Positions 32,111 to 62,859 are shown, counted from the first letter of the stretch. The stretch: 64,000 nt of DNA from Blastocladiella emersonii ATCC 22665 (GCA_025594325.1 JANHCV010000003.1:930001-994000); one strand, 5' to 3'. The notes: generated by a model not told the origin, from the letters alone. Translations and numbers: made by a program.

Positions 32111-32246
32111 GCTGCGACGCGCAAAGCTGCGACGCGCAAAGCTGCGACGCGCAAAGCTGCGACGCGCAAAGCTGCGACGCGCAAAGCTGCGACGCGCAAA
32201 GCTGCGACGCGCAAAGCTGCGACGCGCAAAGCTGCGACGCGCGAAA
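32111..32246 (+). repeat. 15-bp minisatellite (GCTGCGACGCGCAAA) x9
   Basis: Eight exact copies plus one variant, with no spacers. Confidence 0.95.
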
Positions 32247-40656: not shown

Positions 40657-41733
40657 GGTGCGGACTTGAGCGGTGTGGCGGAACGGGTGGTGACGGTGGG
40701 TGGACGGCGAGCGCGGTGCAGCGAAGAGGAGCCAAGCAGCGCGGGTGGGTAGGGTATGGAGCGCAGAGGTAGGCGAGGCGGTCCCGCTATATAGGGCAGC
40801 GAGGACAAGGCGCGACAGCTTGGCGACGGCGGGGGGCGACCGGTGGTGGGGACGCGGTCGACGGAACAGGGGGTACGGGAAGGTCGGGCGTCGACGCGGC
40901 GGATCAGCCGGAATGACGAGGAACGAGTCGTTGGGCTTGCTGAGGACGAGGATGAGCAATCAAGCTGGGCGTTGCATGGACTCGCGTTGCATTCGGGTGC
41001 AGGGACTAGCGAAAGCGAGGAGCCGGTTAGATCAACGCGGAGACGGCGGCGCGCTGATCGGTTGACTCGAAGCGTGTTTTCCGCCGTCAGGTGATGCGTC
41101 GCCGTCGCGTCACAATCGCCTCTCCCCTTCCGCGAGATGCTGCGAGCTCGCGGGGATAATCGATGAGCGAGATGGCGAGCCGTCGGCGTCATTCAATCAG
41201 GGCCCGGCTTGTAGCGGGTGGTCGGTCGTGATCGGCGGCCCGAACGAGCTGACAAGGGAACAGGCAGTCCATTCGAGTCCATATGCATCGAGTCAATGGT
41301 ACGAGCAAAACAGGCGGTGCAGGCCCTCTTGCGCGCGCCGGTAGTCTCGGTCCGAGACAAGCGCGCGAAGGAACGGACACGACGCGAGCAGGTGCGAGAC
41401 GCGAGAAACAATCACGTGCGCGGCTGAACGCGAGACAGGTCGCGTTTTCGCTCGAACGCGCAGCGCCGCGTCCACCGGGTCACTCCGCGGGCCGGTCCGC
41501 TTGCCTTCGCCGATGGCCTTCCACGCCGGCCATGATGCGCGTGTCTCAGAGAATCAGCTCGCCGAGACGGGCGCCCGGCCAGCACACACGCTCGGCCCTG
41601 AACCGGACCGCTCAAAGTCGCGGCCGCGCGCCCGCCGCCCGCTCTCTCTCCCTCGTCGACCGCGCGCCATCACCCACGCCGATCAACGCACTCACCACGC
41701 ACCACCACCACCACCCACCACACCACCACCACC

Positions 41734-42454
41734 ATGTCGATGCAGTCCGCGCAGCCCACGTACGGCTACCCGGCCAAGGAGTACCCGAACATCACGCCGG
41801 CGAGTGCGGGCGGGTTGTCGTCGATCACGGAGACAATCACAGCGCCCATCTCGCGTGCGACGTCGGGCCTGGCGAGTCTCGCGGCGCCGCTGACGGACAC
41901 GGCGGCGTACTGGGGCCGGCTCGGCTACGACACGTTCCGCGTGTACTGGGACGCGTACGTGCTGATGTCTCACTCGCATTCCCCCGAAGCAGCACACTCA
42001 CTCCCCCTCGCTCCCCTCCCCGATGCGTAGCTACCCGGTGCTGCGCGCGTTCACGTACGCGTTCGGTGCGCTGACGGCGATCCCGAACCTCATCTTCCTC
42101 ACGTACGCGGCCATCTCGTTCGGGATCGTGGCGACGATCGCGACGGTCGGCGTGCTCGTGGTCGAGGGCGGGATCCTCGGGTTCGGCATGCTGTTCCTCG
42201 GGCCGATCCTGTTCTTCTCGTTCTGGGGCGCCCTGATCGCCGTCGGCCTGTTCACGGCCGCCTTCTACGGCCTGCGCGCCTCGTCCATCACGCTCAGCAC
42301 GGCGCAGTCGGTCACGGGCGACTCGGGCATCGTCGGGGGCAGCGTCGGTCTCGCCAAGAACGCGCTCGCCACGACGGCCGACCTCATGGAGAAGGCCGAG
42401 GCCGTGGTCGTTGGCCGCGAGGGCCTGCCCGTGCCCATCGCCGGCCGCGTCTAA
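41734..42454 (+). CDS. Promethin/LDAF1-like hydrophobic membrane protein; join(41734..41954, 42031..42454)
   Basis: Intron 41955-42030; long hydrophobic stretch YPVLRAFTYAFGALTAIPNLIFL...VGVLVVEGGILGFGMLFL. The family call is recognition by eye. Confidence 0.6.
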
Positions 42455-43005
42455 GTGCGGCGCGTCGGTCGTCGTCGGTCGTCGTTGGTCGCCGTGTCGT
42501 GTCGTGTCGCAGGGCCGCTCGTTTCCTCACCCATCACCCCGTACCATATCATTCTACCTCCCTCCCATCCCGTACGCGCGCGCCCAGAGTTGAGGGCGAG
42601 GAGTTTGTCACGCCGCCGTCGTCGTGTGAGAATCGAAAAACGTGTTTGTTCTGAACCAAAAACCGCTCGCCCGTCTCGACTGAATGTCAAGGTGTCGTGG
42701 CCGCGCGCGACGCGCTCGACGTGCACGGGCGGGAACGAGAAGTTCCCTCGCGCCGTGCGAGTCATTCGTTGATCTGGAACAAGGCGGGTGCGGCGGACGC
42801 GGCCGAGTGGCGGTGGCTTAGACTCGGAGGGTGGCGCAGCCGTCAACTGACTGAACGACGCGTGAACGACCGCTGTATGCCTTTCCCTTGGCTATCGCGC
42901 GTCGCAAAGGAGGAAGGTATGAACACAGAAGGAGATCAAATTACACGCGTGGTTGAGATTTTGGTTACAATGGTAGGTATCACGAACTGAAAACAAAGTA
43001 AGAGC

Positions 43006-44052
43006 TCAAGAAACGATGGCCGCGGACCGCAGCACGACGACGGGCGCCACCGAGGAGACGGCGCTCGGGAGGACCTTGACGCCGTGCTTGATCGGGCGCG
43101 ACTTGGACTTGGACTCGTACGACGACACGGAAGACACCTTGACGGTACTGGATGCACCGTCCAGGAGGCTGCCGATGCGAGTCTTGAACGACGACCACCG
43201 CGAGGGAGCCGCAGACTCGTCAAAGCTGTTGTTGGCCAGCGTCTGGTCCGAACCAAACTCCTCTGACACAGGAGCGAGGTTTGGACCGTTGTTGTTGGCC
43301 GACTCGGGGAGCTGAACGACCGCCGCTGCCACCTCCACCTTGACCTCGGGGTTCGCCGCGGTTGGCGACGCACTGCCACGGTGGCCGGCATGGCGGCGGA
43401 CCCAGCGCAGCACTTTGCCAGCGGCGCTGCGCTTCTTCTCGGTCGGAATGGTGGTGGTGGTGTTGGCGGACACGGGAACCTCGGAGACGGTACCCGACGC
43501 GGGAACCTGGATCGCGGCGGCCTGGTCGTTGCTCTCGATGACCTTGAAAGCCGAGGCAACCGACGCGGCCGACTTGGACTCGGCCGTAGTAGCAACAGCG
43601 ATAGCGACGGGGGCGGGCTCGAAGGTGGCGCGCAGGGCCGATACATGCACCGTAGCGAGCGCCGCCTCGAGCTCCGCCGTTGTCGCTACACCACCAAACG
43701 CGGCGACCGACTTGATGGTACCGTCGCCGCGCTGCTGAACGCCGTCGTGATGGACGAGGTGAAGCTTGTCCGAAGACCGCGAGCAGGGCGAACGAGTCGC
43801 GGGCGAGCCGAGCGGAGACGCAAACTGCTCGAACTGCGACTTGAGAGTGCCGACCGAGGAGGTCGGCGTCGAGTCGACGACGCACTCGTCGTTGTCGCTG
43901 TGCTTGGTGTTCTCGGGCGCGTTGCGGCTGGTACCGGTCGTGGGAGCGACCACGACGCGGAACGACGACAGCTGGACCGAGGACACGGCAATATTGGGCG
44001 ACGACGAGGTCGAGGTCGAGGTTGAGGGAGCGAGGGCAAGCTGGGAAGACAT
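43006..44052 (-). CDS. Ser/Thr/Ala-rich hypothetical protein, copy 1
   Basis: ATG 44052 (MSSQLALAPSTSTS); intronless, natural composition; no family recognised. Confidence 0.65.
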   Translation of the reverse strand: MSSQLALAPSTSTSTSSSPNIAVSSVQLSSFRVVVAPTTGTSRNAPENTKHSDNDECVVDSTPTSSVGTLKSQFEQFASPLGSPATRSPCSRSSDKLHLVHHDGVQQRGDGTIKSVAAFGGVATTAELEAALATVHVSALRATFEPAPVAIAVATTAESKSAASVASAFKVIESNDQAAAIQVPASGTVSEVPVSANTTTTIPTEKKRSAAGKVLRWVRRHAGHRGSASPTAANPEVKVEVAAAVVQLPESANNNGPNLAPVSEEFGSDQTLANNSFDESAAPSRWSSFKTRIGSLLDGASSTVKVSSVSSYESKSKSRPIKHGVKVLPSAVSSVAPVVVLRSAAIVS

Positions 44053-44829
44053 GGTGTGCGACAAGGTGGTCTTGTGGGGGAAACAATACCTCCTCGGAAA
44101 GTCCTGTTGGAAAGTGAAGAGCGAGAGCTGGAGGGGGTCGGCTGGCCGCGTTTTATGGGACGATCCGCCTCTGCATGCGACCTCCCGACTTTTCGCGCAT
44201 CGACGCGCTCATTGGTCGAGGATTCAAAGATGAATACATGCACTTCCTGGAGGAGCTCATGTGATCCGTGCTGGGTGGCGCAGCAGCGGTCAGCAAAGCC
44301 ACCATCGCGGGCTGGCGCGAACGCGTCGCGTTTCAAGTCCTTGCCGCGAGCCGGGCTCTTGCGATAGCACGCGCGGGTCCAGCTGCGCATCGGGACACGG
44401 GGACACCAACGAGGCATGGCAGCTCGAGGGCGGCGCAGTCATGTTGAAGAGCCACTCGCGGCCACGGGCGCCGCCCATGATCGCGACGCGAACATAGACC
44501 AAGTGGGCCTGAAAGTTCGAACAAACTATCGTCCATGGAGTCTGCTCTATTCATCTAGCGCAACTGCTAGAGTTGCCGGAACCGGGGAGCTGCCGCTGGG
44601 TGCGGGGGCAGCAGACACAGTGCGCATACGACTTCAAACTAGCTCGCCGTTCAATCATGGGAGAGGAGTTCTCAAGCGAGAGGTAGCAGAATTGTAGATC
44701 AAGAGAGCAACGGTGGAGTTTAGGTAGACTATAGACAAGTTTATACAAAAACGCGGCGACATCTAGTTGTAGCGCAGGCGAGCGAACGAGCGAGTGCGAG
44801 TGCGACATGGGCGGCACGGCACCCCTAGC

Positions 44830-45633
44830 TTAGCAGCAGCCGTGGTTGATGGGCAGGATCGTCACGTCGCAGTCGTTGCTGGTGTTGTTGTTGATGGGCA
44901 TGATGTGGAAGTCGCTGCTGCCACTGCCGGTGCTGCAGTCGCCCGAGGGGCCCCAGGTGGCCGGGTTGCCGCCGACAAAGCCGTCGGCCGAGTGGTGGCC
45001 CTGGAACTGGGTCTGCGACTGCGACTGGAACGCGTCGCCGTGGCCGTTGGACCACTGGCCCTGCGACTGCGACTGCGACTGGTGCTGCGCGGCGTCGCCG
45101 TGGCCGTTGCCCCACTGGGTCTGCGACTGGGACTGCTGCTGGGCGCCGTTGCCGCCAAACTGGGTCTGCGACTGCGACTGGGCCTGGTCGACCGAGTGGT
45201 GGTTACCCCAGTTGCCCTGGAACTGGGACTGCGACTGCTGCTGCGCGGCGTCGCCGTGGTGGCCCCAGTTGCCCTGGAACTGCGACTGGGACTGCGACTG
45301 AGCAGCGTCGCCGCCCCACTGAGTCTGCGACTGCGACTGCGACTGCTGCTGGGCACCCGAGCCGTGGCCGAACTGGGTCTGCGTCTGCGACTGGAACTGG
45401 GCCTGGTCGACCGAGTGGTGGCCCTGGAACTGCGACTGCGACTGGGACTGCGACTGCACGGCGTCACCGCCAAACTGGGTCTGCGACTGCGACTGCTGCT
45501 GGGCGCCGTTACCGCCGAACTGGGTCTGCGACTGGGACTGCGACTGAGCGCCGTGGCCGCCAAACTGCATCTGCGACTGCGACTGCGACTGGGTCTGGAC
45601 GGCGGGGACGTGGATGGGAGCGCAGAAGGTCAT
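44830..45633 (-). CDS. Q/S/G-rich pseudo-repeat protein (267 aa) ending in CC, copy 1
   Basis: About 12 repeats of QSQSQ(T/S)Q(F/W)G(G)xxA; ACC-rich start context; TATA-like element upstream. Confidence 0.8.
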   Translation of the reverse strand: MTFCAPIHVPAVQTQSQSQSQMQFGGHGAQSQSQSQTQFGGNGAQQQSQSQTQFGGDAVQSQSQSQSQFQGHHSVDQAQFQSQTQTQFGHGSGAQQQSQSQSQTQWGGDAAQSQSQSQFQGNWGHHGDAAQQQSQSQFQGNWGNHHSVDQAQSQSQTQFGGNGAQQQSQSQTQWGNGHGDAAQHQSQSQSQGQWSNGHGDAFQSQSQTQFQGHHSADGFVGGNPATWGPSGDCSTGSGSSDFHIMPINNNTSNDCDVTILPINHGCC

Positions 45634-46395
45634 CTTGGCGGTGGTTGAGGGAGTGGGAGGCGGTGTGGTGGTGGAGGTTGGGATTGCCGAGTGTGCTGAT
45701 CAGCTGGAAGAGAGGCCGGGGCGCGCCATGGTCTTATACTCTCTCGCTCACCGACGACTGCGACTCAAGAGCAAGTAGAAGTGGTGACGCGTGGCTAAAA
45801 ATGGTCGCCGCGGCCGTCGCGTTTCAGCAGCAGCGGCGCCCCGCAGACCTCGACCGCTCACCGCAAGGCGCGCAGCGGTTCGCGGTCGGCAGCTTCACCT
45901 CTCTCGTGTGGGCTCGCTGCGGATGCGCAGCGGCTCACTGCTCGCCCAAGTTCACAAGTTCCCGTAGCCTCGACCCGCCGCGAACAGCCGAGGGTGAGCC
46001 GGCCAACGCCGTTTCAACTCGGTCGGCGTTGCCCTCAGGACAGTGGCGCAGTCCACGGCGATGATCCATTCGATTCCATTGCATGGAGTGCATCGCTTCA
46101 TTGTAGTGGGCGAGCAAGGGCGCAAGGGAGCGGTGGCAGCGTTCGCGAAGGCGAGACCAAGCGATCAGCGCTGTCTCGCTCCGCTCACGTGTTTGTTCGA
46201 CGCGTCTCCACTTCTCCGTGTTCTTGCACGGTCGAGGCACGAGACAGGAGTGATAGAGACAACAAACGAGATGTAGTTTAATCGCACAGATCGCGGCCAA
46301 CTGACGGTGCGGCTCGGTAGCACGCGTCGTCGCGCCCGCTTGAGCCCGCCCCCGCCGTCGCCTCGCTCGGGACGGCCAAGGACCGGCTCGCCGAC

Positions 46396-46490
46396 TGTCG
46401 CGCGCGTCCCACGCTGCGCCGCGAGAGGGTCAAGTTGAGGTGGATGAGGTCAGAACGAGGAACGGGTCCCGATTAATGGGAACTGCGACA
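46396..46490. mobile_element. Possible 95-bp solo LTR or MITE (mirror at 57359..57453)
   Basis: Begins TGTCGC and ends GCGACA; flanks CCGAC and CCGCC (5-bp TSD-like, one mismatch). Confidence 0.25.
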
Positions 46491-47002
46491 CCGCCGCCAC
46501 GACGCACTACTTGGGATGCACCCAAGGTCGCTGCCCCACTCACCCCCAAGCGCGGCGAAACCACCCACAACCCAGCTCCATCCAGCCTGCTCCCTCGAGG
46601 TTGACACCGACCCTAGTCGACCAGCAGAGAGAGTCCCATACTCGCAGCGGTGACGCACCAGCGGTCCGGCTACTCGCTTGGCGAGGTCACTGCGCGGGAC
46701 GGGTGATGCGGCACATGCGTCGAGGACTCTTCGCGGCGCGATCCAGGAGACGATGTCGAGTCGGAGAGACAGCGGACAAGGGAGCGATTGGGTAAGCGAC
46801 CAGATTTGGACGATGGATGCGCGCAAGAGGTGAGGGGGCAGCAGCCGACTGCGAGAGCGGCACACCTCGGATGTACCCGTTTTGCACGCCGCAGGTAGGC
46901 TGATACAATGGGTTGGCTTCCCGGACGGGATGCGAGGGAAACACAAAGGAGATGGAGGAGGAAGGGGTGGATTGCGATGCAGGAGCTGTACGGGGGCGGC
47001 GA

Positions 47003-49939
47003 TCAGCACGCGCGAGTGAAGTGCGAGAGTGGGTCGACGTGTACCAGACCGGCAATGTTGGACGAGAGGAGCAGCGTGTCGATGTTGTAGATGGCCATGG
47101 TCGAGACGCGGAGCGAGCGCGGGGTGAATGTTCTTGGGTGTAGTAGCAGCGAGAAGGCGACGCTGGTCTGTGTGTTTGAGAGGTGAACAAACAAGAGTCA
47201 GCGAGTAGCACTCGGGATGCGGGTTGGGGATGGGTCGTACCGAGTCCCAAAGTAGTCGACGAGTTGAGGTACCCGACGGCCCACCTCGAGCGCGGGTACT
47301 TGAGCCGCACGAGCACACGCGGCACCGTTGAGGACCTGATCGGCCGCGGCGCTGGTGGTGGTTGATCTCTCGAGTCGGCAGCGTGTACCAGAGCCCGACG
47401 AGATGTCGAGGCTGTCGTAGCTACACGAAGCGGCGGCGTGAGCACGCGATTGGTCGACCGTAGCGCGAGCAGGGCGTACGAGCGCTGACAAACCCTTGAT
47501 GATCACTGTGGACCGCCGAGAGCATCGAGCTGCGACACGACCTCCTTGAGCAGCGTGTACGAGCGCTTGTTGAGGACTCGGTCGGCCGTCGTGACTGACG
47601 TCGCACGGCGACATGCCCGTGTTGGAGAGCCCGACGAGATGTTGAAGCCGAGTCGGCCACGGAATCGACGTGGACGAGAACAGCTTGCGCGCACGCGTGG
47701 TCACGATGACGATGTCGTGGCCCTGGTCGTGTGGCACCTACGCGAAACGGCAGTGTGAACACGCGATTGATCGACCGCAGCGACAGCAGAACGTACGAGT
47801 GCTGAGAAAACCCTCGATGATCACCATGGACCGCCAATAGAACCCGAGTCGCGGCTGCTGCCGCCGATCAGGCGCGCGAGAGCGTGAAGGCGACTCGACT
47901 CGGCCGCCGCGTTGATGTTGCAGCACCACGCCATGTTGATGGCCTGGCGTTGCCGAGCTCGGCCAGACTTGGGGTTGATGCGTCACGGCGACTACACGAT
48001 GCACGAGTCAGCTACGAGGTTTCGTTTGCAGGAGCACACGTTGCAAAGTACCGAGAATGTATGCCCAGCTGGCGCGAGAATGGTCGGCGACCATGTGCGC
48101 CGCGTCGGCGACGTGCGCCAGAGCCCGACGAGGTGTTGAAGCTGCCGAACCGCCGCTGAGTCAATCTGGACACCGACGAGGTCATGTCGCGCGCGCGAGG
48201 TGACGATCGTGATGTGGTTCCACCCGTTCTGTGATGGCTACACGAGGCAAACGGGTGAACACGCGATCGGCAACCACGCTCGGATCAGGACATACGAACG
48301 CTGGAGCGTTACCCCCTTGGTTACGTGAACCGCGCGAGTCTCGAGCTGTGGCTGCCGTCGATCAGGTGCACGGGAGCGCAACGTCGAGCTGGTCCTCGAT
48401 CCCGACTCGATGATGAGGAGAAACCGCCGCCGCCGCTTGATCAGTGCGGGCGCGGACGAGAAGAAGTTGCGCGCGCGCACTCGAGGCCTTGATGATGGTG
48501 TCGTGGTGGCGCGACGACTACACGAAGCAGCGATGTGAGCATGCGATCAGTCGACCGCGACGACGACGGAACGTACAAATGCCGAGAAAGTCCTTGACAA
48601 TCACCGCCGAGCGCCGAGCGCCGAAAGCGTTGAGCCGCGTCTACCGCCGATGAGGTTCAAGAGTGTGGTGGCGACCCAGCTGCTGCGTCGATGGCACGGC
48701 GCGACGTCGCCGTGCATGGTCGCGCGAGTGGATCGACCCACCACGGTGGCCACGAGGCCATGAAGATGAGGAGCTCGTCGGGCGCGAGTAGGTGAGACGC
48801 AGTTGCGCGTCAGGCGGCCGAGGACTCGGTCGGCCTTGGTGACGGTGATGGTGATGGATGGCGCCGCGTGGTGCACGCGCGGGCTGGAGCCCGACGAGAA
48901 GGAGAGGGAGAAGACGAGCAGCTGCGGGATCGACGCGGATCAGAACGTTGCGCACGCGCGTTCTTCTGGTCGTGCGGTGGCTACACAAGGCAAAGGAGGT
49001 GAGTGAACACGCGATTGGCAAGCTGCGCGGACATGGGGACGTACGATTGCTGAAGTCGAGCCCCTTGACCACTGTGAACTGCGCGAGCGCCGAGCCCTGG
49101 ACGCCGTGGATCGGAATGAGAAGACGCGATGGCGAACTCGACGATGCATAGACGGTACGGTGGGGCGCCGCCGAGCTTGGCCAGGCTCGCACGTCGACCT
49201 GTCGCGGCGGCCGCGAGAGCATGAAGAAGGCGAGGAGCTCCTTGCGCGCGCGGGCACTTGAGCTGCGTGTGGTGGAGCCCGACGAGAACTTGTCGCGTGC
49301 GGGAGGCGACAATCGTGACCATGGTCACGAACGGTCGCGCGGTGGCTACACAAAGCGAAAGGGTGAACACGCGATCGGTCAACTACGCCAAGATGAGAAC
49401 GTACGATGGCTGAAGTTGAGCTCCTTGACCACCGAAAACCACGCGATCGTCGAGCCCCGGACACCGTCGATCAGGGCACGAGAAGACGCAATGGCGCGTT
49501 CGGCGACGCGTCGACAGCACGGCGGGGCGGCGCCGACCTTGGCCGAGCTCGTAGGTCGCTTCGTTGCGGCGGCCACGGGCATGATGATGACGAGGAGCTC
49601 CTTGCGCGCGAGCGCTTGAGCAGCGAGTGCGCGGCCATGACCATGATGATGGCGAGGAGCGCCTCGATCGCGCGTGTACTTGAGCAGCGGGTGTACGTGT
49701 CGTAGGGGAACTTGGTCGGCCTTGGTGATGGTGGTAGTGGTTGGCGCCGCGCGTGTCGCCGCGCGTACTTGAACCCGACGAGATGGCGAGGCCGAGCCGT
49801 CACTGGATCGCCGACGCGGTAACAGCCGAGAGAATACGTCGCGCGCGTGAGGTCGTGATGGCGCCGTGGTAGTGCTGCGGCTACACGAGGCAGAAGAGTG
49901 AGTATGGGAACGGCCAGCTGCCCAGAGATCAGGTCGTAC
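47003..49939 (-). pseudogene. Decayed multi-exon gene built from tandemly duplicated exon+intron units, copy 1
   Basis: Mirror of 53910..56846. Confidence 0.5.
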
Positions 49940-52900
49940 GAAGGCCGAACCCGAACTACTTGGGCGCCGCGAACTGCACGAGCGTCGAGCCGTGGACGCC
50001 GTCGATCAGGCGCGCGAGAGCGTGGCGTCGCCGAGCTAGTAGCCGAGCATGGCCGGGCGAGTAGGTCGATCCGTCACGGCGGTCACAAGCATGACGTGGT
50101 CGAGAGGAGAGCGAGCAGGAGGAGAGGAACGAGATGCGAAAGCTCGAGCTCTACACAAGAATTACGGGCGGGATGGCACGAGGATAACAAACGGGAGTCA
50201 GCAACACGATCATATTGTTGTTGCTGGTACGGGGAGGCGTTGCGACCGGGCCGTTCGAGGAAGGGCATGATGAGGATGAGGCAAGTCGTGGTCGCGGCCA
50301 CCGACGCTCATGACAGCCGAGGGAAAGGAACGAGAGAGATGAGAGCGAGCCTCAACCAATGCGTCTCGCCGCCGCCGACGCTCAGGATGAGAGGAGGTGA
50401 AGGGATGAGAGCCCGCCGCCGCGGACGCTCAGGATGAGAGGAGGTGATGGTGAAGGGACGGGAGCGTCGACCACCGACTCGTCTCGCCGCCGCTGACGCT
50501 CAGGGTCGGGAAAGCGAGGAAGGAGGAGATTCGTCGTCGAGATAAGCTTGAAAGTCCCCCGTACCGTTCATCTTCATGCGCGCGCACACACACGGGCAGC
50601 GAGCGAGGCGAGGTGATGGTTGATACATGGTGTTGTGCGGGAGGATGCCCGACCCGGATCGGATCGCGGGCGCTGGTCATGGTCGATGCGTGCGTGCCGT
50701 CGAGTACTTGCGGTTGCAAGGAGTATGAAGGGCGCGAGCGCGAACGTTGGAGGGGGAGGGTAGGCCGTGGGAGTGCGAGCGTGCGGCGGTAGCGGTGGTG
50801 CACGGGCGGGACGGCAAGACGCGCATCGCGACGCGTCTGGATCAGAGTGGTAGGCCAGTGCGTGAAACTACATTTCCGCGCGGATCATAACGTAGCAACG
50901 CCGGGAACGAGTCGCGGCGCGAGACCCGCCGTGCCCGCGCGCGAAATTGTCTCGCGCTGTGTCTCGCGGCTCATCAAGGGTGGCGAAAACGTCCACGTGC
51001 GCTCGCTCGCTCGCTCGCGGAGACCATCGTCGATTGCCGCGGGAAGTGGAGCGCGGTGGCGGGGGACGCGTCTCGAAAATGGAGACAGCCGGGACGCGTC
51101 GCGCCCGATGCGAGACGTCACGCGAGCCGCGCGTGCCGCGCTTCTCGAGACATCTCGTGATCGGTCGGGGACCACCCGGAGACACCACGTGTGCAGCACG
51201 CCGCGAGTTTCGCGAGCCGTCACACAAGCAATCTTATCGACGCGGGAGCGCGAACACCGGACTGACGTATTTGCCGTGGCCTTCTATCAGGCTCTCCTTC
51301 CCTGGCTCTCCATCGATTGGAGCGGTCAACAAACCTGAAAGTCCGTTGGCGCGCTCTGACTGCCTTGAAGCCGCTGAAGCTGGCCACGACGCAGCGCGTT
51401 CAACCGCAGCGGATCCTCCTCGTGCTACTCCCTTCCTGGCACCGTATCAGCGTCACCGATGCACTGGGCCCGTGCTTGCGTCGAGGACACGGACGCGCGG
51501 AAGATCGCGGGCTTCTGACGCGGTACAAAGGGTGTACTTGTTGTGGTTGAGACCCGACCAGTGTGGGCCCTGCCGGGGAGGCGACTGCCGCCGAACGCTG
51601 GTGTGGACAGCTGCATGGCGTGGAAGAAGATCGAGCGGGCTCGGCACACCTCCCCGAAAAGGAGACTCAGAGCGGATCCGGGCGACATCGACGAGAAGCG
51701 GCGAGATTGGGGAGAAGCCGAGCGGGTTGCCCTAATGTATTTCGTTCGAGTTCCATGAGCCGTCACGGCGCGAGTTCTGTTGCATGGAGTCCAGTGTGAG
51801 GAGTGCGGATCGGGGGTCGAGGGTGCGGAGGAAGATGGCGCACCAGCAGGGATCGTCGGGCGGAGCGCAGACCACCTCGAGCAGGCGTGGGTGTCGATCA
51901 CGTTGCACCTGCAGGGGCTGCGACGCGACGCGTTTGACGCTCTCGCGCTCTACACAAGATCACCGGTATTGGACGGCGGGAGTGTTGAGCCCGGAGGCAC
52001 ATGAAGCAAAATGCTGACCGGACCTTCAGCGGTGCCGTGGCCGAGGGGGTAGTACGGACCGGTGTACTCGCGACTCGGCCACGGAGCCGTACAAGCCCAA
52101 TAGCGAAGCGGGACTCGTTAAGGTGGTGTCTCGCCCCACTCCCGTCCAGCTCCAGGAAGGATCTAAACGATGCTAAGGTCACGCATGATGAAGTCGATGC
52201 GGGTGGGACGCGAGAGGCTCGCGGATGGGTCGGCGATGGTTACGATGTTCGCAAAGCGACGGCCCGTCTGGATGTGGCCGACTGAAGCCGGGTGGCGCAT
52301 CTCCAGCAGGGCGATCCTCATACACATGATATGAGTTGGTCCGCCGTGTCACTGTACATGGGCGAGATCATGGCGGCTGCCGCAGGAACAGACCGATACA
52401 GAGGGAGTAGGAGCAGGGATATCGTTGCAGCTAGTTGCCGGGGCTTCTATGCATAGGATTCATGGTCTCTACAATTAACGATTTGGACGTGGGTACGTGG
52501 GAGAGCAGCGATCGACGAGGCGATCACGAAGACGAAAGCACTCAGCAACGGGTCACGTGGTGTGAGCGACACGTTCGTTCTCGACAATCCGAGCCGGCTT
52601 TCAGGATGTCTTTTGACACTGGGCAGTCACCCGTCATGACTCTCATCATGATTCTCGATTTATTCTTAAGAAACTGCACACATTGATCCCGGACGAACCC
52701 CCGCGAAGCGCGGCACGCGCGGCTCGCGTGACGTCTCGCATCGGGCGCGACGCGTCCCGGCTGTCTCCATTTTCGAGACGCGTCCCCCGCCACCGCGCTC
52801 CACTTCCCGCGGCAATCGACGATGGTCTCCGCGAGCGAGCGAGCGAGCGCACGTGGACGTTTTCGCCACCCTTGATGAGCCGCGAGACACAGCGCGAGAC

Positions 52901-53909
52901 AATTTCGCGCGCGGGCACGGCGGGTCTCGCGCCGCGACTCGTTCCCGGCGTTGCTACGTTATGATCCGCGCGGAAATGTAGTTTCACGCACTGGCCTACC
53001 ACTCTGATCCAGACGCGTCGCGATGCGCGTCTTGCCGTCCCGCCCGTGCACCACCGCTACCGCCGCACGCTCGCACTCCCACGGCCTACCCTCCCCCTCC
53101 AACGTTCGCGCTCGCGCCCTTCATACTCCTTGCAACCGCAAGTACTCGACGGCACGCACGCATCGACCATGACCAGCGCCCGCGATCCGATCCGGGTCGG
53201 GCATCCTCCCGCACAACACCATGTATCAACCATCACCTCGCCTCGCTCGCTGCCCGTGTGTGTGCGCGCGCATGAAGATGAACGGTACGGGGGACTTTCA
53301 AGCTTATCTCGACGACGAATCTCCTCCTTCCTCGCTTTCCCGACCCTGAGCGTCAGCGGCGGCGAGACGAGTCGGTGGTCGACGCTCCCGTCCCTTCACC
53401 ATCACCTCCTCTCATCCTGAGCGTCCGCGGCGGCGGGCTCTCATCCCTTCACCTCCTCTCATCCTGAGCGTCGGCGGCGGCGAGACGCATTGGTTGAGGC
53501 TCGCTCTCATCTCTCTCGTTCCTTTCCCTCGGCTGTCATGAGCGTCGGTGGCCGCGACCACGACTTGCCTCATCCTCATCATGCCCTTCCTCGAACGGCC
53601 CGGTCGCAACGCCTCCCCGTACCAGCAACAACAATATGATCGTGTTGCTGACTCCCGTTTGTTATCCTCGTGCCATCCCGCCCGTAATTCTTGTGTAGAG
53701 CTCGAGCTTTCGCATCTCGTTCCTCTCCTCCTGCTCGCTCTCCTCTCGACCACGTCATGCTTGTGACCGCCGTGACGGATCGACCTACTCGCCCGGCCAT
53801 GCTCGGCTACTAGCTCGGCGACGCCACGCTCTCGCGCGCCTGATCGACGGCGTCCACGGCTCGACGCTCGTGCAGTTCGCGGCGCCCAAGTAGTTCGGGT
53901 TCGGCCTTC

Positions 53910-56846
53910 GTACGACCTGATCTCTGGGCAGCTGGCCGTTCCCATACTCACTCTTCTGCCTCGTGTAGCCGCAGCACTACCACGGCGCCATCACGACCTC
54001 ACGCGCGCGACGTATTCTCTCGGCTGTTACCGCGTCGGCGATCCAGTGACGGCTCGGCCTCGCCATCTCGTCGGGTTCAAGTACGCGCGGCGACACGCGC
54101 GGCGCCAACCACTACCACCATCACCAAGGCCGACCAAGTTCCCCTACGACACGTACACCCGCTGCTCAAGTACACGCGCGATCGAGGCGCTCCTCGCCAT
54201 CATCATGGTCATGGCCGCGCACTCGCTGCTCAAGCGCTCGCGCGCAAGGAGCTCCTCGTCATCATCATGCCCGTGGCCGCCGCAACGAAGCGACCTACGA
54301 GCTCGGCCAAGGTCGGCGCCGCCCCGCCGTGCTGTCGACGCGTCGCCGAACGCGCCATTGCGTCTTCTCGTGCCCTGATCGACGGTGTCCGGGGCTCGAC
54401 GATCGCGTGGTTTTCGGTGGTCAAGGAGCTCAACTTCAGCCATCGTACGTTCTCATCTTGGCGTAGTTGACCGATCGCGTGTTCACCCTTTCGCTTTGTG
54501 TAGCCACCGCGCGACCGTTCGTGACCATGGTCACGATTGTCGCCTCCCGCACGCGACAAGTTCTCGTCGGGCTCCACCACACGCAGCTCAAGTGCCCGCG
54601 CGCGCAAGGAGCTCCTCGCCTTCTTCATGCTCTCGCGGCCGCCGCGACAGGTCGACGTGCGAGCCTGGCCAAGCTCGGCGGCGCCCCACCGTACCGTCTA
54701 TGCATCGTCGAGTTCGCCATCGCGTCTTCTCATTCCGATCCACGGCGTCCAGGGCTCGGCGCTCGCGCAGTTCACAGTGGTCAAGGGGCTCGACTTCAGC
54801 AATCGTACGTCCCCATGTCCGCGCAGCTTGCCAATCGCGTGTTCACTCACCTCCTTTGCCTTGTGTAGCCACCGCACGACCAGAAGAACGCGCGTGCGCA
54901 ACGTTCTGATCCGCGTCGATCCCGCAGCTGCTCGTCTTCTCCCTCTCCTTCTCGTCGGGCTCCAGCCCGCGCGTGCACCACGCGGCGCCATCCATCACCA
55001 TCACCGTCACCAAGGCCGACCGAGTCCTCGGCCGCCTGACGCGCAACTGCGTCTCACCTACTCGCGCCCGACGAGCTCCTCATCTTCATGGCCTCGTGGC
55101 CACCGTGGTGGGTCGATCCACTCGCGCGACCATGCACGGCGACGTCGCGCCGTGCCATCGACGCAGCAGCTGGGTCGCCACCACACTCTTGAACCTCATC
55201 GGCGGTAGACGCGGCTCAACGCTTTCGGCGCTCGGCGCTCGGCGGTGATTGTCAAGGACTTTCTCGGCATTTGTACGTTCCGTCGTCGTCGCGGTCGACT
55301 GATCGCATGCTCACATCGCTGCTTCGTGTAGTCGTCGCGCCACCACGACACCATCATCAAGGCCTCGAGTGCGCGCGCGCAACTTCTTCTCGTCCGCGCC
55401 CGCACTGATCAAGCGGCGGCGGCGGTTTCTCCTCATCATCGAGTCGGGATCGAGGACCAGCTCGACGTTGCGCTCCCGTGCACCTGATCGACGGCAGCCA
55501 CAGCTCGAGACTCGCGCGGTTCACGTAACCAAGGGGGTAACGCTCCAGCGTTCGTATGTCCTGATCCGAGCGTGGTTGCCGATCGCGTGTTCACCCGTTT
55601 GCCTCGTGTAGCCATCACAGAACGGGTGGAACCACATCACGATCGTCACCTCGCGCGCGCGACATGACCTCGTCGGTGTCCAGATTGACTCAGCGGCGGT
55701 TCGGCAGCTTCAACACCTCGTCGGGCTCTGGCGCACGTCGCCGACGCGGCGCACATGGTCGCCGACCATTCTCGCGCCAGCTGGGCATACATTCTCGGTA
55801 CTTTGCAACGTGTGCTCCTGCAAACGAAACCTCGTAGCTGACTCGTGCATCGTGTAGTCGCCGTGACGCATCAACCCCAAGTCTGGCCGAGCTCGGCAAC
55901 GCCAGGCCATCAACATGGCGTGGTGCTGCAACATCAACGCGGCGGCCGAGTCGAGTCGCCTTCACGCTCTCGCGCGCCTGATCGGCGGCAGCAGCCGCGA
56001 CTCGGGTTCTATTGGCGGTCCATGGTGATCATCGAGGGTTTTCTCAGCACTCGTACGTTCTGCTGTCGCTGCGGTCGATCAATCGCGTGTTCACACTGCC
56101 GTTTCGCGTAGGTGCCACACGACCAGGGCCACGACATCGTCATCGTGACCACGCGTGCGCGCAAGCTGTTCTCGTCCACGTCGATTCCGTGGCCGACTCG
56201 GCTTCAACATCTCGTCGGGCTCTCCAACACGGGCATGTCGCCGTGCGACGTCAGTCACGACGGCCGACCGAGTCCTCAACAAGCGCTCGTACACGCTGCT
56301 CAAGGAGGTCGTGTCGCAGCTCGATGCTCTCGGCGGTCCACAGTGATCATCAAGGGTTTGTCAGCGCTCGTACGCCCTGCTCGCGCTACGGTCGACCAAT
56401 CGCGTGCTCACGCCGCCGCTTCGTGTAGCTACGACAGCCTCGACATCTCGTCGGGCTCTGGTACACGCTGCCGACTCGAGAGATCAACCACCACCAGCGC
56501 CGCGGCCGATCAGGTCCTCAACGGTGCCGCGTGTGCTCGTGCGGCTCAAGTACCCGCGCTCGAGGTGGGCCGTCGGGTACCTCAACTCGTCGACTACTTT
56601 GGGACTCGGTACGACCCATCCCCAACCCGCATCCCGAGTGCTACTCGCTGACTCTTGTTTGTTCACCTCTCAAACACACAGACCAGCGTCGCCTTCTCGC
56701 TGCTACTACACCCAAGAACATTCACCCCGCGCTCGCTCCGCGTCTCGACCATGGCCATCTACAACATCGACACGCTGCTCCTCTCGTCCAACATTGCCGG
56801 TCTGGTACACGTCGACCCACTCTCGCACTTCACTCGCGCGTGCTGA
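53910..56846 (+). pseudogene. Decayed multi-exon gene built from tandemly duplicated exon+intron units, copy 2
   Basis: Seven similar 58-64-nt GT-AG introns, each preceded by similar sequence; no continuous reading frame across the exons. Confidence 0.5.
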
Positions 56847-58107
56847 TCGCCGCCCCCGTACAGCTCCTGCATCGCAATCCACCCCTTCCTCCTCCATCTC
56901 CTTTGTGTTTCCCTCGCATCCCGTCCGGGAAGCCAACCCATTGTATCAGCCTACCTGCGGCGTGCAAAACGGGTACATCCGAGGTGTGCCGCTCTCGCAG
57001 TCGGCTGCTGCCCCCTCACCTCTTGCGCGCATCCATCGTCCAAATCTGGTCGCTTACCCAATCGCTCCCTTGTCCGCTGTCTCTCCGACTCGACATCGTC
57101 TCCTGGATCGCGCCGCGAAGAGTCCTCGACGCATGTGCCGCATCACCCGTCCCGCGCAGTGACCTCGCCAAGCGAGTAGCCGGACCGCTGGTGCGTCACC
57201 GCTGCGAGTATGGGACTCTCTCTGCTGGTCGACTAGGGTCGGTGTCAACCTCGAGGGAGCAGGCTGGATGGAGCTGGGTTGTGGGTGGTTTCGCCGCGCT
57301 TGGGGGTGAGTGGGGCAGCGACCTTGGGTGCATCCCAAGTAGTGCGTCGTGGCGGCGGTGTCGCAGTTCCCATTAATCGGGACCCGTTCCTCGTTCTGAC
57401 CTCATCCACCTCAACTTGACCCTCTCGCGGCGCAGCGTGGGACGCGCGCGACAGTCGGCGAGCCGGTCCTTGGCCGTCCCGAGCGAGGCGACGGCGGGGG
57501 CGGGCTCAAGCGGGCGCGACGACGCGTGCTACCGAGCCGCACCGTCAGTTGGCCGCGATCTGTGCGATTAAACTACATCTCGTTTGTTGTCTCTATCACT
57601 CCTGTCTCGTGCCTCGACCGTGCAAGAACACGGAGAAGTGGAGACGCGTCGAACAAACACGTGAGCGGAGCGAGACAGCGCTGATCGCTTGGTCTCGCCT
57701 TCGCGAACGCCGCCACCGCTCCCTTGCGCCCTTGCTCGCCCACTACAATGAAGCGATGCACTCCATGCAATGGAATCGAATGGATCATCGCCGTGGACTG
57801 CGCCACTGTCCTGAGGGCAACGCCGACCGAGTTGAAACGGCGTTGGCCGGCTCACCCTCGGCTGTTCGCGGCGGGTCGAGGCTACGGGAACTTGTGAACT
57901 TGGGCGAGCAGTGAGCCGCTGCGCATCCGCAGCGAGCCCACACGAGAGAGGTGAAGCTGCCGACCGCGAACCGCTGCGCGCCTTGCGGTGAGCGGTCGAG
58001 GTCTGCGGGGCGCCGCTGCTGCTGAAACGCGACGGCCGCGGCGACCATTTTTAGCCACGCGTCACCACTTCTACTTGCTCTTGAGTCGCAGTCGTCGGTG
58101 AGCGAGA

Positions 58108-58115
58108 GAGTATAA
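58108..58115 (+). promoter_or_regulatory. TATA-like element (GTATAAGA) ~105 bp upstream of the Q/S/G-repeat gene (mirrored in the left arm)
   Basis: Rare TATAA run in very GC-rich DNA; a similar GTATAAGA lies ~170 bp upstream of the VWD gene. Confidence 0.4.
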
Positions 58116-58215
58116 GACCATGGCGCGCCCCGGCCTCTCTTCCAGCTGATCAGCACACTCGGCAATCCCAACCTCCACCACCACACCGCCTCCCACTCCC
58201 TCAACCACCGCCAAG

Positions 58216-59019
58216 ATGACCTTCTGCGCTCCCATCCACGTCCCCGCCGTCCAGACCCAGTCGCAGTCGCAGTCGCAGATGCAGTTTGGCGGCCACGGCG
58301 CTCAGTCGCAGTCCCAGTCGCAGACCCAGTTCGGCGGTAACGGCGCCCAGCAGCAGTCGCAGTCGCAGACCCAGTTTGGCGGTGACGCCGTGCAGTCGCA
58401 GTCCCAGTCGCAGTCGCAGTTCCAGGGCCACCACTCGGTCGACCAGGCCCAGTTCCAGTCGCAGACGCAGACCCAGTTCGGCCACGGCTCGGGTGCCCAG
58501 CAGCAGTCGCAGTCGCAGTCGCAGACTCAGTGGGGCGGCGACGCTGCTCAGTCGCAGTCCCAGTCGCAGTTCCAGGGCAACTGGGGCCACCACGGCGACG
58601 CCGCGCAGCAGCAGTCGCAGTCCCAGTTCCAGGGCAACTGGGGTAACCACCACTCGGTCGACCAGGCCCAGTCGCAGTCGCAGACCCAGTTTGGCGGCAA
58701 CGGCGCCCAGCAGCAGTCCCAGTCGCAGACCCAGTGGGGCAACGGCCACGGCGACGCCGCGCAGCACCAGTCGCAGTCGCAGTCGCAGGGCCAGTGGTCC
58801 AACGGCCACGGCGACGCGTTCCAGTCGCAGTCGCAGACCCAGTTCCAGGGCCACCACTCGGCCGACGGCTTTGTCGGCGGCAACCCGGCCACCTGGGGCC
58901 CCTCGGGCGACTGCAGCACCGGCAGTGGCAGCAGCGACTTCCACATCATGCCCATCAACAACAACACCAGCAACGACTGCGACGTGACGATCCTGCCCAT
59001 CAACCACGGCTGCTGCTAA
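58216..59019 (+). CDS. Q/S/G-rich pseudo-repeat protein (267 aa) ending in CC, copy 2
   Basis: Translation identical to 44830..45633. Confidence 0.8.
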   Translation: MTFCAPIHVPAVQTQSQSQSQMQFGGHGAQSQSQSQTQFGGNGAQQQSQSQTQFGGDAVQSQSQSQSQFQGHHSVDQAQFQSQTQTQFGHGSGAQQQSQSQSQTQWGGDAAQSQSQSQFQGNWGHHGDAAQQQSQSQFQGNWGNHHSVDQAQSQSQTQFGGNGAQQQSQSQTQWGNGHGDAAQHQSQSQSQGQWSNGHGDAFQSQSQTQFQGHHSADGFVGGNPATWGPSGDCSTGSGSSDFHIMPINNNTSNDCDVTILPINHGCC

Positions 59020-59796
59020 GCTAGGGGTGCCGTGCCGCCCATGTCGCACTCGCACTCGCTCGTTCGCTCGCCTGCGCTACAACTAGATGTCGCCGCGTTT
59101 TTGTATAAACTTGTCTATAGTCTACCTAAACTCCACCGTTGCTCTCTTGATCTACAATTCTGCTACCTCTCGCTTGAGAACTCCTCTCCCATGATTGAAC
59201 GGCGAGCTAGTTTGAAGTCGTATGCGCACTGTGTCTGCTGCCCCCGCACCCAGCGGCAGCTCCCCGGTTCCGGCAACTCTAGCAGTTGCGCTAGATGAAT
59301 AGAGCAGACTCCATGGACGATAGTTTGTTCGAACTTTCAGGCCCACTTGGTCTATGTTCGCGTCGCGATCATGGGCGGCGCCCGTGGCCGCGAGTGGCTC
59401 TTCAACATGACTGCGCCGCCCTCGAGCTGCCATGCCTCGTTGGTGTCCCCGTGTCCCGATGCGCAGCTGGACCCGCGCGTGCTATCGCAAGAGCCCGGCT
59501 CGCGGCAAGGACTTGAAACGCGACGCGTTCGCGCCAGCCCGCGATGGTGGCTTTGCTGACCGCTGCTGCGCCACCCAGCACGGATCACATGAGCTCCTCC
59601 AGGAAGTGCATGTATTCATCTTTGAATCCTCGACCAATGAGCGCGTCGATGCGCGAAAAGTCGGGAGGTCGCATGCAGAGGCGGATCGTCCCATAAAACG
59701 CGGCCAGCCGACCCCCTCCAGCTCTCGCTCTTCACTTTCCAACAGGACTTTCCGAGGAGGTATTGTTTCCCCCACAAGACCACCTTGTCGCACACC

Positions 59797-60843
59797 ATGT
59801 CTTCCCAGCTTGCCCTCGCTCCCTCAACCTCGACCTCGACCTCGTCGTCGCCCAATATTGCCGTGTCCTCGGTCCAGCTGTCGTCGTTCCGCGTCGTGGT
59901 CGCTCCCACGACCGGTACCAGCCGCAACGCGCCCGAGAACACCAAGCACAGCGACAACGACGAGTGCGTCGTCGACTCGACGCCGACCTCCTCGGTCGGC
60001 ACTCTCAAGTCGCAGTTCGAGCAGTTTGCGTCTCCGCTCGGCTCGCCCGCGACTCGTTCGCCCTGCTCGCGGTCTTCGGACAAGCTTCACCTCGTCCATC
60101 ACGACGGCGTTCAGCAGCGCGGCGACGGTACCATCAAGTCGGTCGCCGCGTTTGGTGGTGTAGCGACAACGGCGGAGCTCGAGGCGGCGCTCGCTACGGT
60201 GCATGTATCGGCCCTGCGCGCCACCTTCGAGCCCGCCCCCGTCGCTATCGCTGTTGCTACTACGGCCGAGTCCAAGTCGGCCGCGTCGGTTGCCTCGGCT
60301 TTCAAGGTCATCGAGAGCAACGACCAGGCCGCCGCGATCCAGGTTCCCGCGTCGGGTACCGTCTCCGAGGTTCCCGTGTCCGCCAACACCACCACCACCA
60401 TTCCGACCGAGAAGAAGCGCAGCGCCGCTGGCAAAGTGCTGCGCTGGGTCCGCCGCCATGCCGGCCACCGTGGCAGTGCGTCGCCAACCGCGGCGAACCC
60501 CGAGGTCAAGGTGGAGGTGGCAGCGGCGGTCGTTCAGCTCCCCGAGTCGGCCAACAACAACGGTCCAAACCTCGCTCCTGTGTCAGAGGAGTTTGGTTCG
60601 GACCAGACGCTGGCCAACAACAGCTTTGACGAGTCTGCGGCTCCCTCGCGGTGGTCGTCGTTCAAGACTCGCATCGGCAGCCTCCTGGACGGTGCATCCA
60701 GTACCGTCAAGGTGTCTTCCGTGTCGTCGTACGAGTCCAAGTCCAAGTCGCGCCCGATCAAGCACGGCGTCAAGGTCCTCCCGAGCGCCGTCTCCTCGGT
60801 GGCGCCCGTCGTCGTGCTGCGGTCCGCGGCCATCGTTTCTTGA
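59797..60843 (+). CDS. Ser/Thr/Ala-rich hypothetical protein, copy 2
   Basis: Mirror of 43006..44052. Confidence 0.65.
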   Translation: MSSQLALAPSTSTSTSSSPNIAVSSVQLSSFRVVVAPTTGTSRNAPENTKHSDNDECVVDSTPTSSVGTLKSQFEQFASPLGSPATRSPCSRSSDKLHLVHHDGVQQRGDGTIKSVAAFGGVATTAELEAALATVHVSALRATFEPAPVAIAVATTAESKSAASVASAFKVIESNDQAAAIQVPASGTVSEVPVSANTTTTIPTEKKRSAAGKVLRWVRRHAGHRGSASPTAANPEVKVEVAAAVVQLPESANNNGPNLAPVSEEFGSDQTLANNSFDESAAPSRWSSFKTRIGSLLDGASSTVKVSSVSSYESKSKSRPIKHGVKVLPSAVSSVAPVVVLRSAAIVS

Positions 60844-61394
60844 GCTCTTACTTTGTTTTCAGTTCGTGATACCTACCATTGTAACCAAAATCTCAACCAC
60901 GCGTGTAATTTGATCTCCTTCTGTGTTCATACCTTCCTCCTTTGCGACGCGCGATAGCCAAGGGAAAGGCATACAGCGGTCGTTCACGCGTCGTTCAGTC
61001 AGTTGACGGCTGCGCCACCCTCCGAGTCTAAGCCACCGCCACTCGGCCGCGTCCGCCGCACCCGCCTTGTTCCAGATCAACGAATGACTCGCACGGCGCG
61101 AGGGAACTTCTCGTTCCCGCCCGTGCACGTCGAGCGCGTCGCGCGCGGCCACGACACCTTGACATTCAGTCGAGACGGGCGAGCGGTTTTTGGTTCAGAA
61201 CAAACACGTTTTTCGATTCTCACACGACGACGGCGGCGTGACAAACTCCTCGCCCTCAACTCTGGGCGCGCGCGTACGGGATGGGAGGGAGGTAGAATGA
61301 TATGGTACGGGGTGATGGGTGAGGAAACGAGCGGCCCTGCGACACGACACGACACGGCGACCAACGACGACCGACGACGACCGACGCGCCGCAC

Positions 61395-62078
61395 TTAGAC
61401 GCGGCCGGCGATGGGCACGGGCAGGCCCTCGCGGCCAACGACCACGGCCTCGGCCTTCTCCATGAGGTCGGCCGTCGTGGCGAGCGCGTTCTTGGCGAGA
61501 CCGACGCTGCCCCCGACGATGCCCGAGTCGCCCGTGACCGACTGCGCCGTGCTGAGCGTGATGGACGAGGCGCGCAGGCCGTAGAAGGCGGCCGTGAACA
61601 GGCCGACGGCGATCAGGGCGCCCCAGAACGAGAAGAACAGGATCGGCCCGAGGAACAGCATGCCGAACCCGAGGATCCCGCCCTCGACCACGAGCACGCC
61701 GACCGTCGCGATCGTCTCGGCGCGAACGGCAGGCGGCTTGTGTTGAACCAACTTGATCGGATAGCAAGCGAGAGCGTGCAGGAGAGCCTCCTTCATGTGT
61801 GGCAACCGAAGCGAGTCGAGCGGCCCTGACTCAAGGAGCTGGTCGCCAAGTATCGGTGCGAACGCGAACATCCAATCGAGCATGCGCGAGACGCTGGTGA
61901 CCGCCACGACCCCCCTCGGGAAGTGTTCACCGAGGTAGCGGGAGAGTTCGATTTCCTCCGAAAGCATGTGGAACAACAGCTGCACGTCGATCGCCAGTTC
62001 AAGGTCGCTGATCGCCTCTAGGACGCCAGGGTTCCAAGCGAGGAGTGGGAGAACCGCGAGATAGTCAAGCAAGGACAT
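61395..62078 (-). CDS. Chimeric ORF: ~120 codons of an unrelated gene fused in frame to the promethin-like C-terminal ~106 aa
   Basis: ...HKPPAVRAE|TIATVGVLVVEGG... reads without a stop across the arm boundary at 61716/61717. Expression is unknown. Confidence 0.45.
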   Translation of the reverse strand: MSLLDYLAVLPLLAWNPGVLEAISDLELAIDVQLLFHMLSEEIELSRYLGEHFPRGVVAVTSVSRMLDWMFAFAPILGDQLLESGPLDSLRLPHMKEALLHALACYPIKLVQHKPPAVRAETIATVGVLVVEGGILGFGMLFLGPILFFSFWGALIAVGLFTAAFYGLRASSITLSTAQSVTGDSGIVGGSVGLAKNALATTADLMEKAEAVVVGREGLPVPIAGRV

Positions 62079-62707
62079 TGGTCGGACAGCTTGACAAGCG
62101 GGCTCGCCCAGTACCACGAGTGAGCGCCGCCAGAATACCGGGACAGATACAGCGCGTGGGAGACCGAGTGCCAGCATGCACGCTTCACGTCAAGCAACTC
62201 GGGCGCTCGTTCGAACGTGTCTTCGAGCAGCTTGCGGGCCGCCGTCGCGTCTCCGCTCGCGATGACGGCAAGAATCAGCTGGAGCTGCGAGAAGCCGGGT
62301 GATTTGAAACACGACGTGAGCTGCGGTGCGAGGTGCGGGCGGTGGCCAACCAGCTTGTTCTTGCGCTCGGGAGGATCGATGAGCGCAGTGCAGCGCTTCG
62401 GATCCGATTTCGCAGCTTCTCGAGCGGGCTGTAAGAGCTGAAGAAAGGTGTCCGACGTTACATAGAAGAGGCCGCGGCTGCGATAGCCCGGTTTGCCTGG
62501 TGCGACGCACTGCAAGTAGCCGATGAGGTCGGTCAGAGGAAGCTTTCCCGACGCGATGTCTACCTTGTCAAGGACGTGGTCCCGCGAGCTGCACCACGGC
62601 GGCGAGCAGCTCGAACGGGACGTCACCCAGTCGAAAGTCGCCGTTACCGACTCCGCTGTCGGGAGCCTTGCCCGGATCGGCCGCTGGGACATAGTGCGCA
62701 GAGTCAT
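62018..62707 (-). pseudogene. Unknown lower-GC ORF, probably the 5' part of the gene interrupted by the right arm
   Basis: 229-aa ORF, protein-like up to ~62170, where the protein-like frame switches to ORF 61395..62177. Confidence 0.35.
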
Positions 62708-62859
62708 GTTTCATTGAAGTTGACGCATGCTCCATGGTGACGAGGTGGCAGGAAGCGCTTACGGCGACGAAAGCGCACTTAAGGAAACTCCACGCCACCG
62801 CGCCAACGCGATGATTTCTTCACGTGTTGACCGTATACATGTATTTCGACCACCCCATC

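Follow-up and report, generated by a model that had tools for sequence, protein, structure and literature searches.

A 64,000-nucleotide stretch of the genome of the early-diverging fungus Blastocladiella emersonii ATCC 22665, referred to here as the window (contig 15, positions 930001-994000, in a 32.65-Mb assembly of 21 contigs), carries a 19.6-kb palindrome whose two 9,012-nt arms differ from each other at a single position. Comparison of this palindrome (locus A) with paralogous loci in the same genome, named B, C, D, E and F, shows that it is one of a family and makes it likely that it is a genuine chromosomal palindrome, that it is older than the near-identity of its arms implies, and that the arms have been kept identical by gene conversion. 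The parts of locus A are listed here by their position in the window.

42133-51144, plus strand: left arm, the reverse complement of 52705-61716 with one mismatch.
51145-52704, plus strand: spacer S, single-copy and non-coding, 1,560 nt, common to loci B, C, D and E.
52705-61716, minus strand: right arm, mirror of the left arm.
46138 (partner 57711): the single arm-to-arm difference, an A in the left arm only.

Direct comparison of the two arms paired each position x with 103849-x, with 99.99% identity over the 9,012 nt and an abrupt end of pairing at 42132/61717. The coordinates, arm length, spacer length and single mismatch of the original prediction, which had been made from the sequence of the window, were all reproduced, and the arm pairing bears out its view of a real inverted segmental duplication; a repeat this long is far beyond chance. 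The sole mismatch is A at 46138 as opposed to G on the complement of 57711. The left arm of locus A alone carries the A, while its right arm, both B arms and both C arms have G; the left arm has thus undergone a new G>A change. A repeat finder and BLAST lengthened the arms by 3 nt (51145-51147/52702-52704), leaving a spacer of 1,554 nt by those limits; the added positions comprise one mismatch and then two matches, and at most 2 nt of putative microhomology is visible past the arm ends. The window contains no N. Locus A sits 0.97 Mb into a 2.64-Mb contig that runs on for hundreds of kilobases on either side, and it is flanked by a tRNase Z gene (37945-40959, minus strand) on one side and by an intact TTI1 gene on the other. 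A whole-assembly search found the left flank (40700-41734) to be unique in the genome, which rules it out as a repeat that truncated the arm. The spacer has no copy in the arms and is not self-complementary; self-comparison returned only a single match, of 52 nt at 77%, which rules out a decayed older palindrome.

Arm and spacer were searched against the whole assembly, and six loci were found in total (contigs are abbreviated C15, C16 and so on).

Locus A, this window: 9,012-nt arms and 1,560-nt spacer.
Locus B, C15:1150666-1164646 / 1166201-1180181: 183 kb from A, 13,981-nt arms, spacer 100% identical to that of A.
Locus C, C16:995496-1002835 / 1004423-1011764: 7.3-kb arms, spacer ~91% identical to that of A.
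Locus D, C1:3526508-3528671 / 3531815-3533978: 2.2-kb arms, spacer ~78% identical.
Locus E, C15:2287159-2294016: spacer (~84% identical) and one arm only.
Locus F, C19:1574362-1586236: one arm without spacer, with a 6.2-kb insertion.

The middle of D spans 3.1 kb and comprises the spacer together with the leftover inner part of one arm. Pairwise distances rise from A-C (8-9%) through A-E (10-16%) to D (17-22%) and F (19-33%), which suggests the branching order (((A/B, C), E), D), F. The outer arms of A and B are 8-15% diverged. The A and C spacers differ by 8.6%, and there has been no recent exchange between the A/B and C spacers. Two further observations concern locus F: its insertion (C19:1579320-1585562) holds a decayed inverted repeat of its own (1580716-1581632 / 1583210-1584093, 81%), and the piece of arm just past the insertion is much closer to A (88.7%) than is the rest of F (78-82%).

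Differences between the palindromes were shared by the two arms of each. In a four-way arm alignment of A and B, all 220 substitutions and 30 indel events were present in both arms of their palindrome, and in the comparison of A with C 628 substitutions were common to both arms, with position 46138 as the only difference within a palindrome. The arms of B are identical but for one dinucleotide 35 nt from the outer edge, those of C agree throughout 7,270 nt and differ only in the last 70 nt before the outer edge, and those of D show 0 differences in 2,150 nt. One internal difference was therefore counted in ~32 kb of paired arm, compared to 8-22% between loci. The A/B differences (155 transitions and 65 transversions) showed no strong one-directional C>T pattern of the kind left by repeat-induced point mutation.

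The arm/spacer junction provides a marker of common origin. In C it lies no more than 8 nt from that of A and B, on both sides, and locus E has no inverted homology at the site that would make it a hot spot. Because of this shared junction and the lack of a hot spot in E, a single origin before the split of A/B from C appears far more probable than three independent events that happened to use one and the same pair of breakpoints, and a single origin would in turn mean that the differences carried by both arms require continuing homogenization of the arms. The arms are thus probably identical because they have been homogenized and not because they are young. The duplication had been called very recent in the original prediction, a view that is not supported, given the recurrence of the same spacer and the same junctions at the diverged loci B and C and the substitutions found in both arms.

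We propose that the sequence lying right of the 1.56-kb segment was duplicated in inverted orientation and its mirror copy joined to the left side of that segment, probably by fold-back or template switching and before A/B and C separated. Frequent arm-to-arm (intrachromosomal, non-allelic) gene conversion since that time would have erased mutations or copied them into both arms, and the palindrome would then have been copied to other places, giving B and C. Indirect signs of conversion are the mosaic of tracts in the comparison of A with B, described below, and the confinement of leftover arm differences to the outer edges in B and C.

Identity between A and B forms a mirror-symmetric mosaic of 100%, ~1%-diverged and 8-15%-diverged tracts, given here in window positions.

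Left half of A up to ~44200: 8-15% from B.
44461-45147: 1-2% from B.
45577-48062: no difference from B.
48062-50248 and mirror: ~1% from B.
50248 through the spacer to 53601: no difference from B.
45577-58272, as a whole: central zone nearly identical to B, putative exchange tracts.

This pattern fits several A-B conversion events of different ages, each spread to both arms, suggesting that A and B still exchange sequence across the 183 kb that separate them.

We also compared the outer edges of the palindromes, where three features of locus A are informative.

41735-42132, plus strand: segment X, outside the A arm and homologous to both B arms, with exon 1 and the start of exon 2 of a promethin-like gene.
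61717-64000, minus strand: right flank Y, ~90% identical to the outer part of both B arms, reaching window-equivalent position 64746.
61703-61730: deletion junction at the outer edge of the right arm, with short imperfect microhomology (TCGCGA...).

Y is ~3 kb in all (61717-64746) and holds the 3' part of the intact TTI1 gene, whose minus-strand open frame (62863-66414) matches PF24173 (E 1.2e-15) and PF21547 (E 2e-11). X (398 bp, on the left) and Y (on the right) are both contiguous parts of the B arms, which argues that both A arms descend from a longer arm, of which X would be a remnant. The right arm of A is without ~701 bp found in B (C15:1175118-1175818), including the 398 bp retained on the left side of A, and the edge at 61716 is set by this 701-bp deletion, which truncated the right promethin copy and is best read as a later event in the right arm and not as a founding breakpoint. 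An outer duplication breakpoint had been placed within exon 2 of the promethin-like gene; its location at 42133 is correct, and the edge there appears to result from the later deletion and not from the duplication itself. Similarly, the sequence after 61716 had been described as unique, which holds in that it has no inverted partner within the window but not in that it matches both B arms.

Both B arms carry a fragment of TTI1 that covers codons 557-1183 at 87.5% amino-acid identity and contains one in-frame stop (pseudogene fragments at C15:1177072-1179069, mirror 1151886-1153772). Since TTI1 is intact beside A and fragmentary in both B arms, B appears to derive from an A-like locus. Beyond the TTI1 fragment, both B arms contain a 1.2-kb segment, Z, found nowhere else in the genome. 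Because Z is common to both of them, the B arms would have been extended or remade by new inverted copying after separation from A. Taken from these comparisons, the edges of the palindromes seem both to shrink, in A, and to grow outward, in B over the TTI1 fragment and the local sequence Z. In E, C and D the arm follows directly on the right end of the spacer; in A this arm continues to TTI1, and the contiguity of arm and Y is ancestral. An insertion of the right arm into a resident gene is rejected on these grounds. Because the spacer adjoins the arm at its right end in those three loci and TTI1 follows in A, the right arm is probably the original one, with the left arm added as a copy at the left end of the spacer.

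Several points weigh against an old palindrome kept by conversion. Conversion is deduced from paralogues inside one assembly and was not seen directly. Arm trees cannot tell concerted evolution from repeated re-formation, which leaves the case resting on the junction shared by A/B and C, and the A and B junctions are not independent, as their centers have recently exchanged sequence. Segment Z is absent from A, which means that at least part of the B palindrome was made or extended after separation and shows that new inverted copying does take place within the family. The arm limits of D differ from those of the others and D may have formed independently. Finally, a recent genome-wide burst would likewise leave all four palindromes with perfect arms.

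These points bear on the alternative that locus A is a very recent one-off inverted duplication, made by fold-back or template switching, with arms identical for want of time. The single difference in 9,012 nt, the sharp outer boundaries of A, the new inverted copying indicated by Z and the different arm limits of D are all in keeping with such an event, and the 1.56-kb spacer falls within the range of fold-back duplications (766-70,466 bp, median 3.4 kb; PMC3907307). It would require, however, that A, B and C formed separately, with the same spacer and the same two junctions to within 8 nt, after 8-15% divergence, at a site where E lacks the inverted microhomology of a hot spot. Separate origins should also have spread the ages of the palindromes, yet all four are equally perfect, and the 701-bp deletion would have to fit within the time of one substitution. 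We therefore consider a recent one-off duplication unlikely, and take the palindrome to be probably older than its arm identity would suggest.

A fold-back assembly artefact had been named in the original prediction as the main alternative, and wrong joining of near-identical repeats by the assembler would be another form of such an error. The center of A is nearly identical to that of B and could mislead an assembler, and the spacer can be oriented against the flanks only by reads of more than ~9 kb or by the one single-nucleotide polymorphism (SNP), which leaves that orientation less secure. The turn of the palindrome, however, is 1.56 kb of genomic sequence, with no adapter or zero-length turn, and the same sequence adjoins a single arm in E. 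Three paralogous palindromes share the design, and the 220 substitutions and 30 indels relative to B are found in both arms, each of which is tied to its own flank (tRNase Z or TTI1). The one arm-specific SNP was kept, and the locus lies deep within a 2.64-Mb contig. The assembly was built from ~185x HiFi reads with a mean length of 10.5 kb, long enough for the spacer and both junctions, and adapter-containing reads had been removed (PMC9730499). An assembly error is thus excluded only indirectly, but seems very improbable.

A foldback-type transposon, a mobile element whose terminal inverted repeats are very long and whose insertions would be the four palindromes, is very unlikely, as the presence of several copies on three contigs and the degenerate subrepeats of the inner arms, as in foldback elements, are outweighed by the lack of any transposase, reverse transcriptase or recombinase domain in 20 open frames searched against Pfam, by outer limits that differ among A, B, C and D and give no shared termini with target-site duplications, by A-B homology that continues past the arms into the host genes promethin and TTI1, as in a segmental duplication, and by the homogenization of arms that would still be required within each copy. 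Two origins had been offered by the original prediction, template switching and aberrant transposition; the former, or fold-back, is probable for the founding event, while the latter is opposed by the absence of transposon domains and of any tRNA or Rfam match and by the extension of B homology into host genes.

A more speculative reading, to which we give little weight, is that the 1.56-kb center, or the adjoining arm ends, which are CG-rich and laden with short palindromes, act in cis as a module that makes and keeps palindromes. A recurrent break at a specific site, or a barrier to replication forks, might for example prompt fold-back copying and arm-to-arm repair time and again. Close to the arm/spacer junction, no more than ~50 nt away, are three separate homology boundaries (51102 for F, 51136 for C and 51144 for A/B), and homology to E begins within 10-20 nt of the left end of the spacer. 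These clustered boundaries, the starting point of E, the outward growth of B and the perfect arms of all the palindromes examined would fit a cis-acting module. If this were true, B. emersonii would carry a self-propagating family of perfect palindromes in which pairs of fast-evolving orphan genes always stay identical. The inner end of the arm (51080-51147) is CG-rich and contains the short perfect palindromes GACGCGTC (twice) and GACGTC.

GC content by codon position (GC3) indicated three coding stretches per arm, and the gene content of the palindrome is as follows.

41734-42451, plus strand: promethin-like gene of two exons, intact on the left only (PF16015, GC3 0.95).
61398-61716, minus strand: truncated right promethin copy, last 106 codons.
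43009-44064, minus strand: S/T-rich orphan gene (GC3 0.81); mirror at 59785-60840, plus strand.
44833-45633, minus strand: Q/S/G-repeat orphan gene (GC3 0.92); mirror at 58216-59016, plus strand.
46265-51144, minus strand: non-coding inner arm block with no GC3 signal, codon periodicity or Pfam match; mirror at 52705-57584.

The exon structure of the promethin-like gene was taken from tblastn against the B copy, with the exons searched separately. Against the model of the promethin (LDAF1) family, PF16015 (gathering cut-off 27 bits), the left copy scored 40.5 bits (E 2.5e-10) and the truncated right copy 17.7 bits, under the cut-off. The right remnant is fused to an upstream open frame that has a GC3 of 0.70 and looks non-coding. 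The S/T-rich and Q/S/G-repeat frames are whole in both arms, in agreement with the earlier view that two intact genes are doubled. All eight indels between the A and B copies of the S/T-rich frame are multiples of three, which argues that it is a real, fast-evolving gene. The Q/S/G-repeat gene belongs to a multi-copy family with matches on contigs 1, 8, 11, 18 and 19. Neither doubled gene had a match in Pfam or in the ESM Atlas, and both remain orphans.

The two gene families also occur in other inverted arrangements. The Q/S-gene family and the pair formed by the promethin and S/T-rich genes gave inverted pairs of equal score at C8:22701-30631, C8:95916-101940, C18:482363-487730 and C15:2086115-2092023, which suggests further small palindromes. 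In addition, the promethin and S/T-rich pair occurs with identical bit scores and in opposite orientation ~345 kb apart, at C15:1950460-1954101 and C15:2296080-2298269, and these may form a very widely spaced inverted duplication.

A coding role for the spacer and the inner 4.9 kb of the arms was ruled out. These regions showed no GC3 signal, their substitutions relative to C, D, E and F were without three-nucleotide periodicity, and none of their 14 open frames matched Pfam; the remaining six of the 20 frames searched were genes and flank frames elsewhere. The inner block contains an array of seven degenerate, intron-like 51-nt motifs at 47438-49948 (mirror 53901-56411), spaced 280-535 nt apart. 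The motif has the form GTACG...CTCAC on the outward strand, with TAG ~17 nt downstream, in a block without coding signal, and the array may stem from a repeat-exon gene now in decay or from a non-coding transcript. No tRNA and no Rfam match was found in the palindrome.

Other repeats of the window lie outside the palindrome. A perfect 300-nt direct repeat (18324-18623 / 20586-20885, 2,262 nt apart) could stem from a tandem duplication or flank a small element as its terminal repeats; near it are a 45-nt pair (19379/21827) and a coding-like tandem repeat of 39/21 nt at 19963-20160. A 15-nt tandem repeat, ACGCGCAAAGCTGCG, is present in ~10 copies at 32072-32275, in a region of lower GC.

Mammalian sex chromosomes offer the best-known palindromes that conversion keeps identical; their presumed role there is to protect genes that have no recombining partner. 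The palindromes of primate and mouse sex chromosomes, such as human Y P1-P8 and those on the X, are kept by arm-to-arm gene conversion (PMC8600007; PMC8327919; bioRxiv 10.1101/800185; Rozen et al. 2003, as cited in PMC5490193). Like these, locus A has a unique spacer flanked by arms that are many kilobases long and more than 99.9% identical. The arms are far closer to each other than related palindromes are, they include members of a multi-copy gene family, and the edges gain and lose sequence, although at 9 kb the arms of A are at the small end of the range. Locus A differs in its fungal host and in being located inside an ordinary contig between the housekeeping genes tRNase Z and TTI1, with no evidence of a sex chromosome or of suppressed recombination, and its persistence is read from paralogues in one genome and not from orthologues in other species.

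As a looser match, gene-bearing palindromes have also been described in the bdelloid rotifer Adineta vaga and the parthenogenetic springtail Folsomia candida (PMC5490193). There, as in B. emersonii, many inverted collinear blocks are scattered on ordinary chromosomes, and conversion has been proposed as a consequence (PMC5490193). The blocks in those animals are recognized at the level of gene order and are much more diverged (Ks ~0.2 in Folsomia), unlike the letter-identical arms found here. An explanation by asexuality is made doubtful by domains of Spo11 (TP6A_N; C17:1414606-1414770), Mnd1 (C3:954383-954481) and Hop2 (TBPIP; C1:4604652-4604783), all above the Pfam cut-off, which indicate that at least part of the meiotic toolkit is encoded in the genome. 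To our knowledge, no sexual cycle has been described for B. emersonii.

Fold-back inverted duplications (PMC3907307; yeast work, PMC10622511) share with locus A the arrangement of inverted copy, spacer of 1-3 kb and original, with the mirror copy attached at one end of the spacer. By analogy with these, fold-back is a plausible mechanism for the founding event of the family and for the outward growth of B. Fold-back duplications arise de novo, and most pass through a dicentric intermediate and entail a terminal deletion; locus A, in contrast, is interstitial, keeps its flanking genes and is conserved across diverged paralogues. In another fungus, Candida albicans, inversions and changes in copy number are driven by long inverted repeats (Todd et al. 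2019, as cited in PMC7371428). As described in that citing source, they are likewise long, highly identical and recombining inverted repeats of a fungal genome, but they are mostly widely spaced copies of gene families or transposons and not compact palindromes with a conserved center, and the accounts of the C. albicans repeats that we found contain no description of concerted evolution of a palindrome family. The B. emersonii genome paper mentions neither palindromes nor inverted repeats (PMC9730499). The palindrome is of a known kind; what is new is the organism.

If locus A is a palindrome maintained by conversion, as we consider likely, the pattern known from sex chromosomes would not be tied to them. 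Its effect in this fungus would be to provide two always-identical copies of two fast-evolving orphan genes. For annotation it carries a warning, as duplicates in the B. emersonii genome that are identical need not be young. B. emersonii could also serve as a cheap laboratory system for the study of arm-to-arm conversion, spacer flipping, and the birth and death of palindromes.

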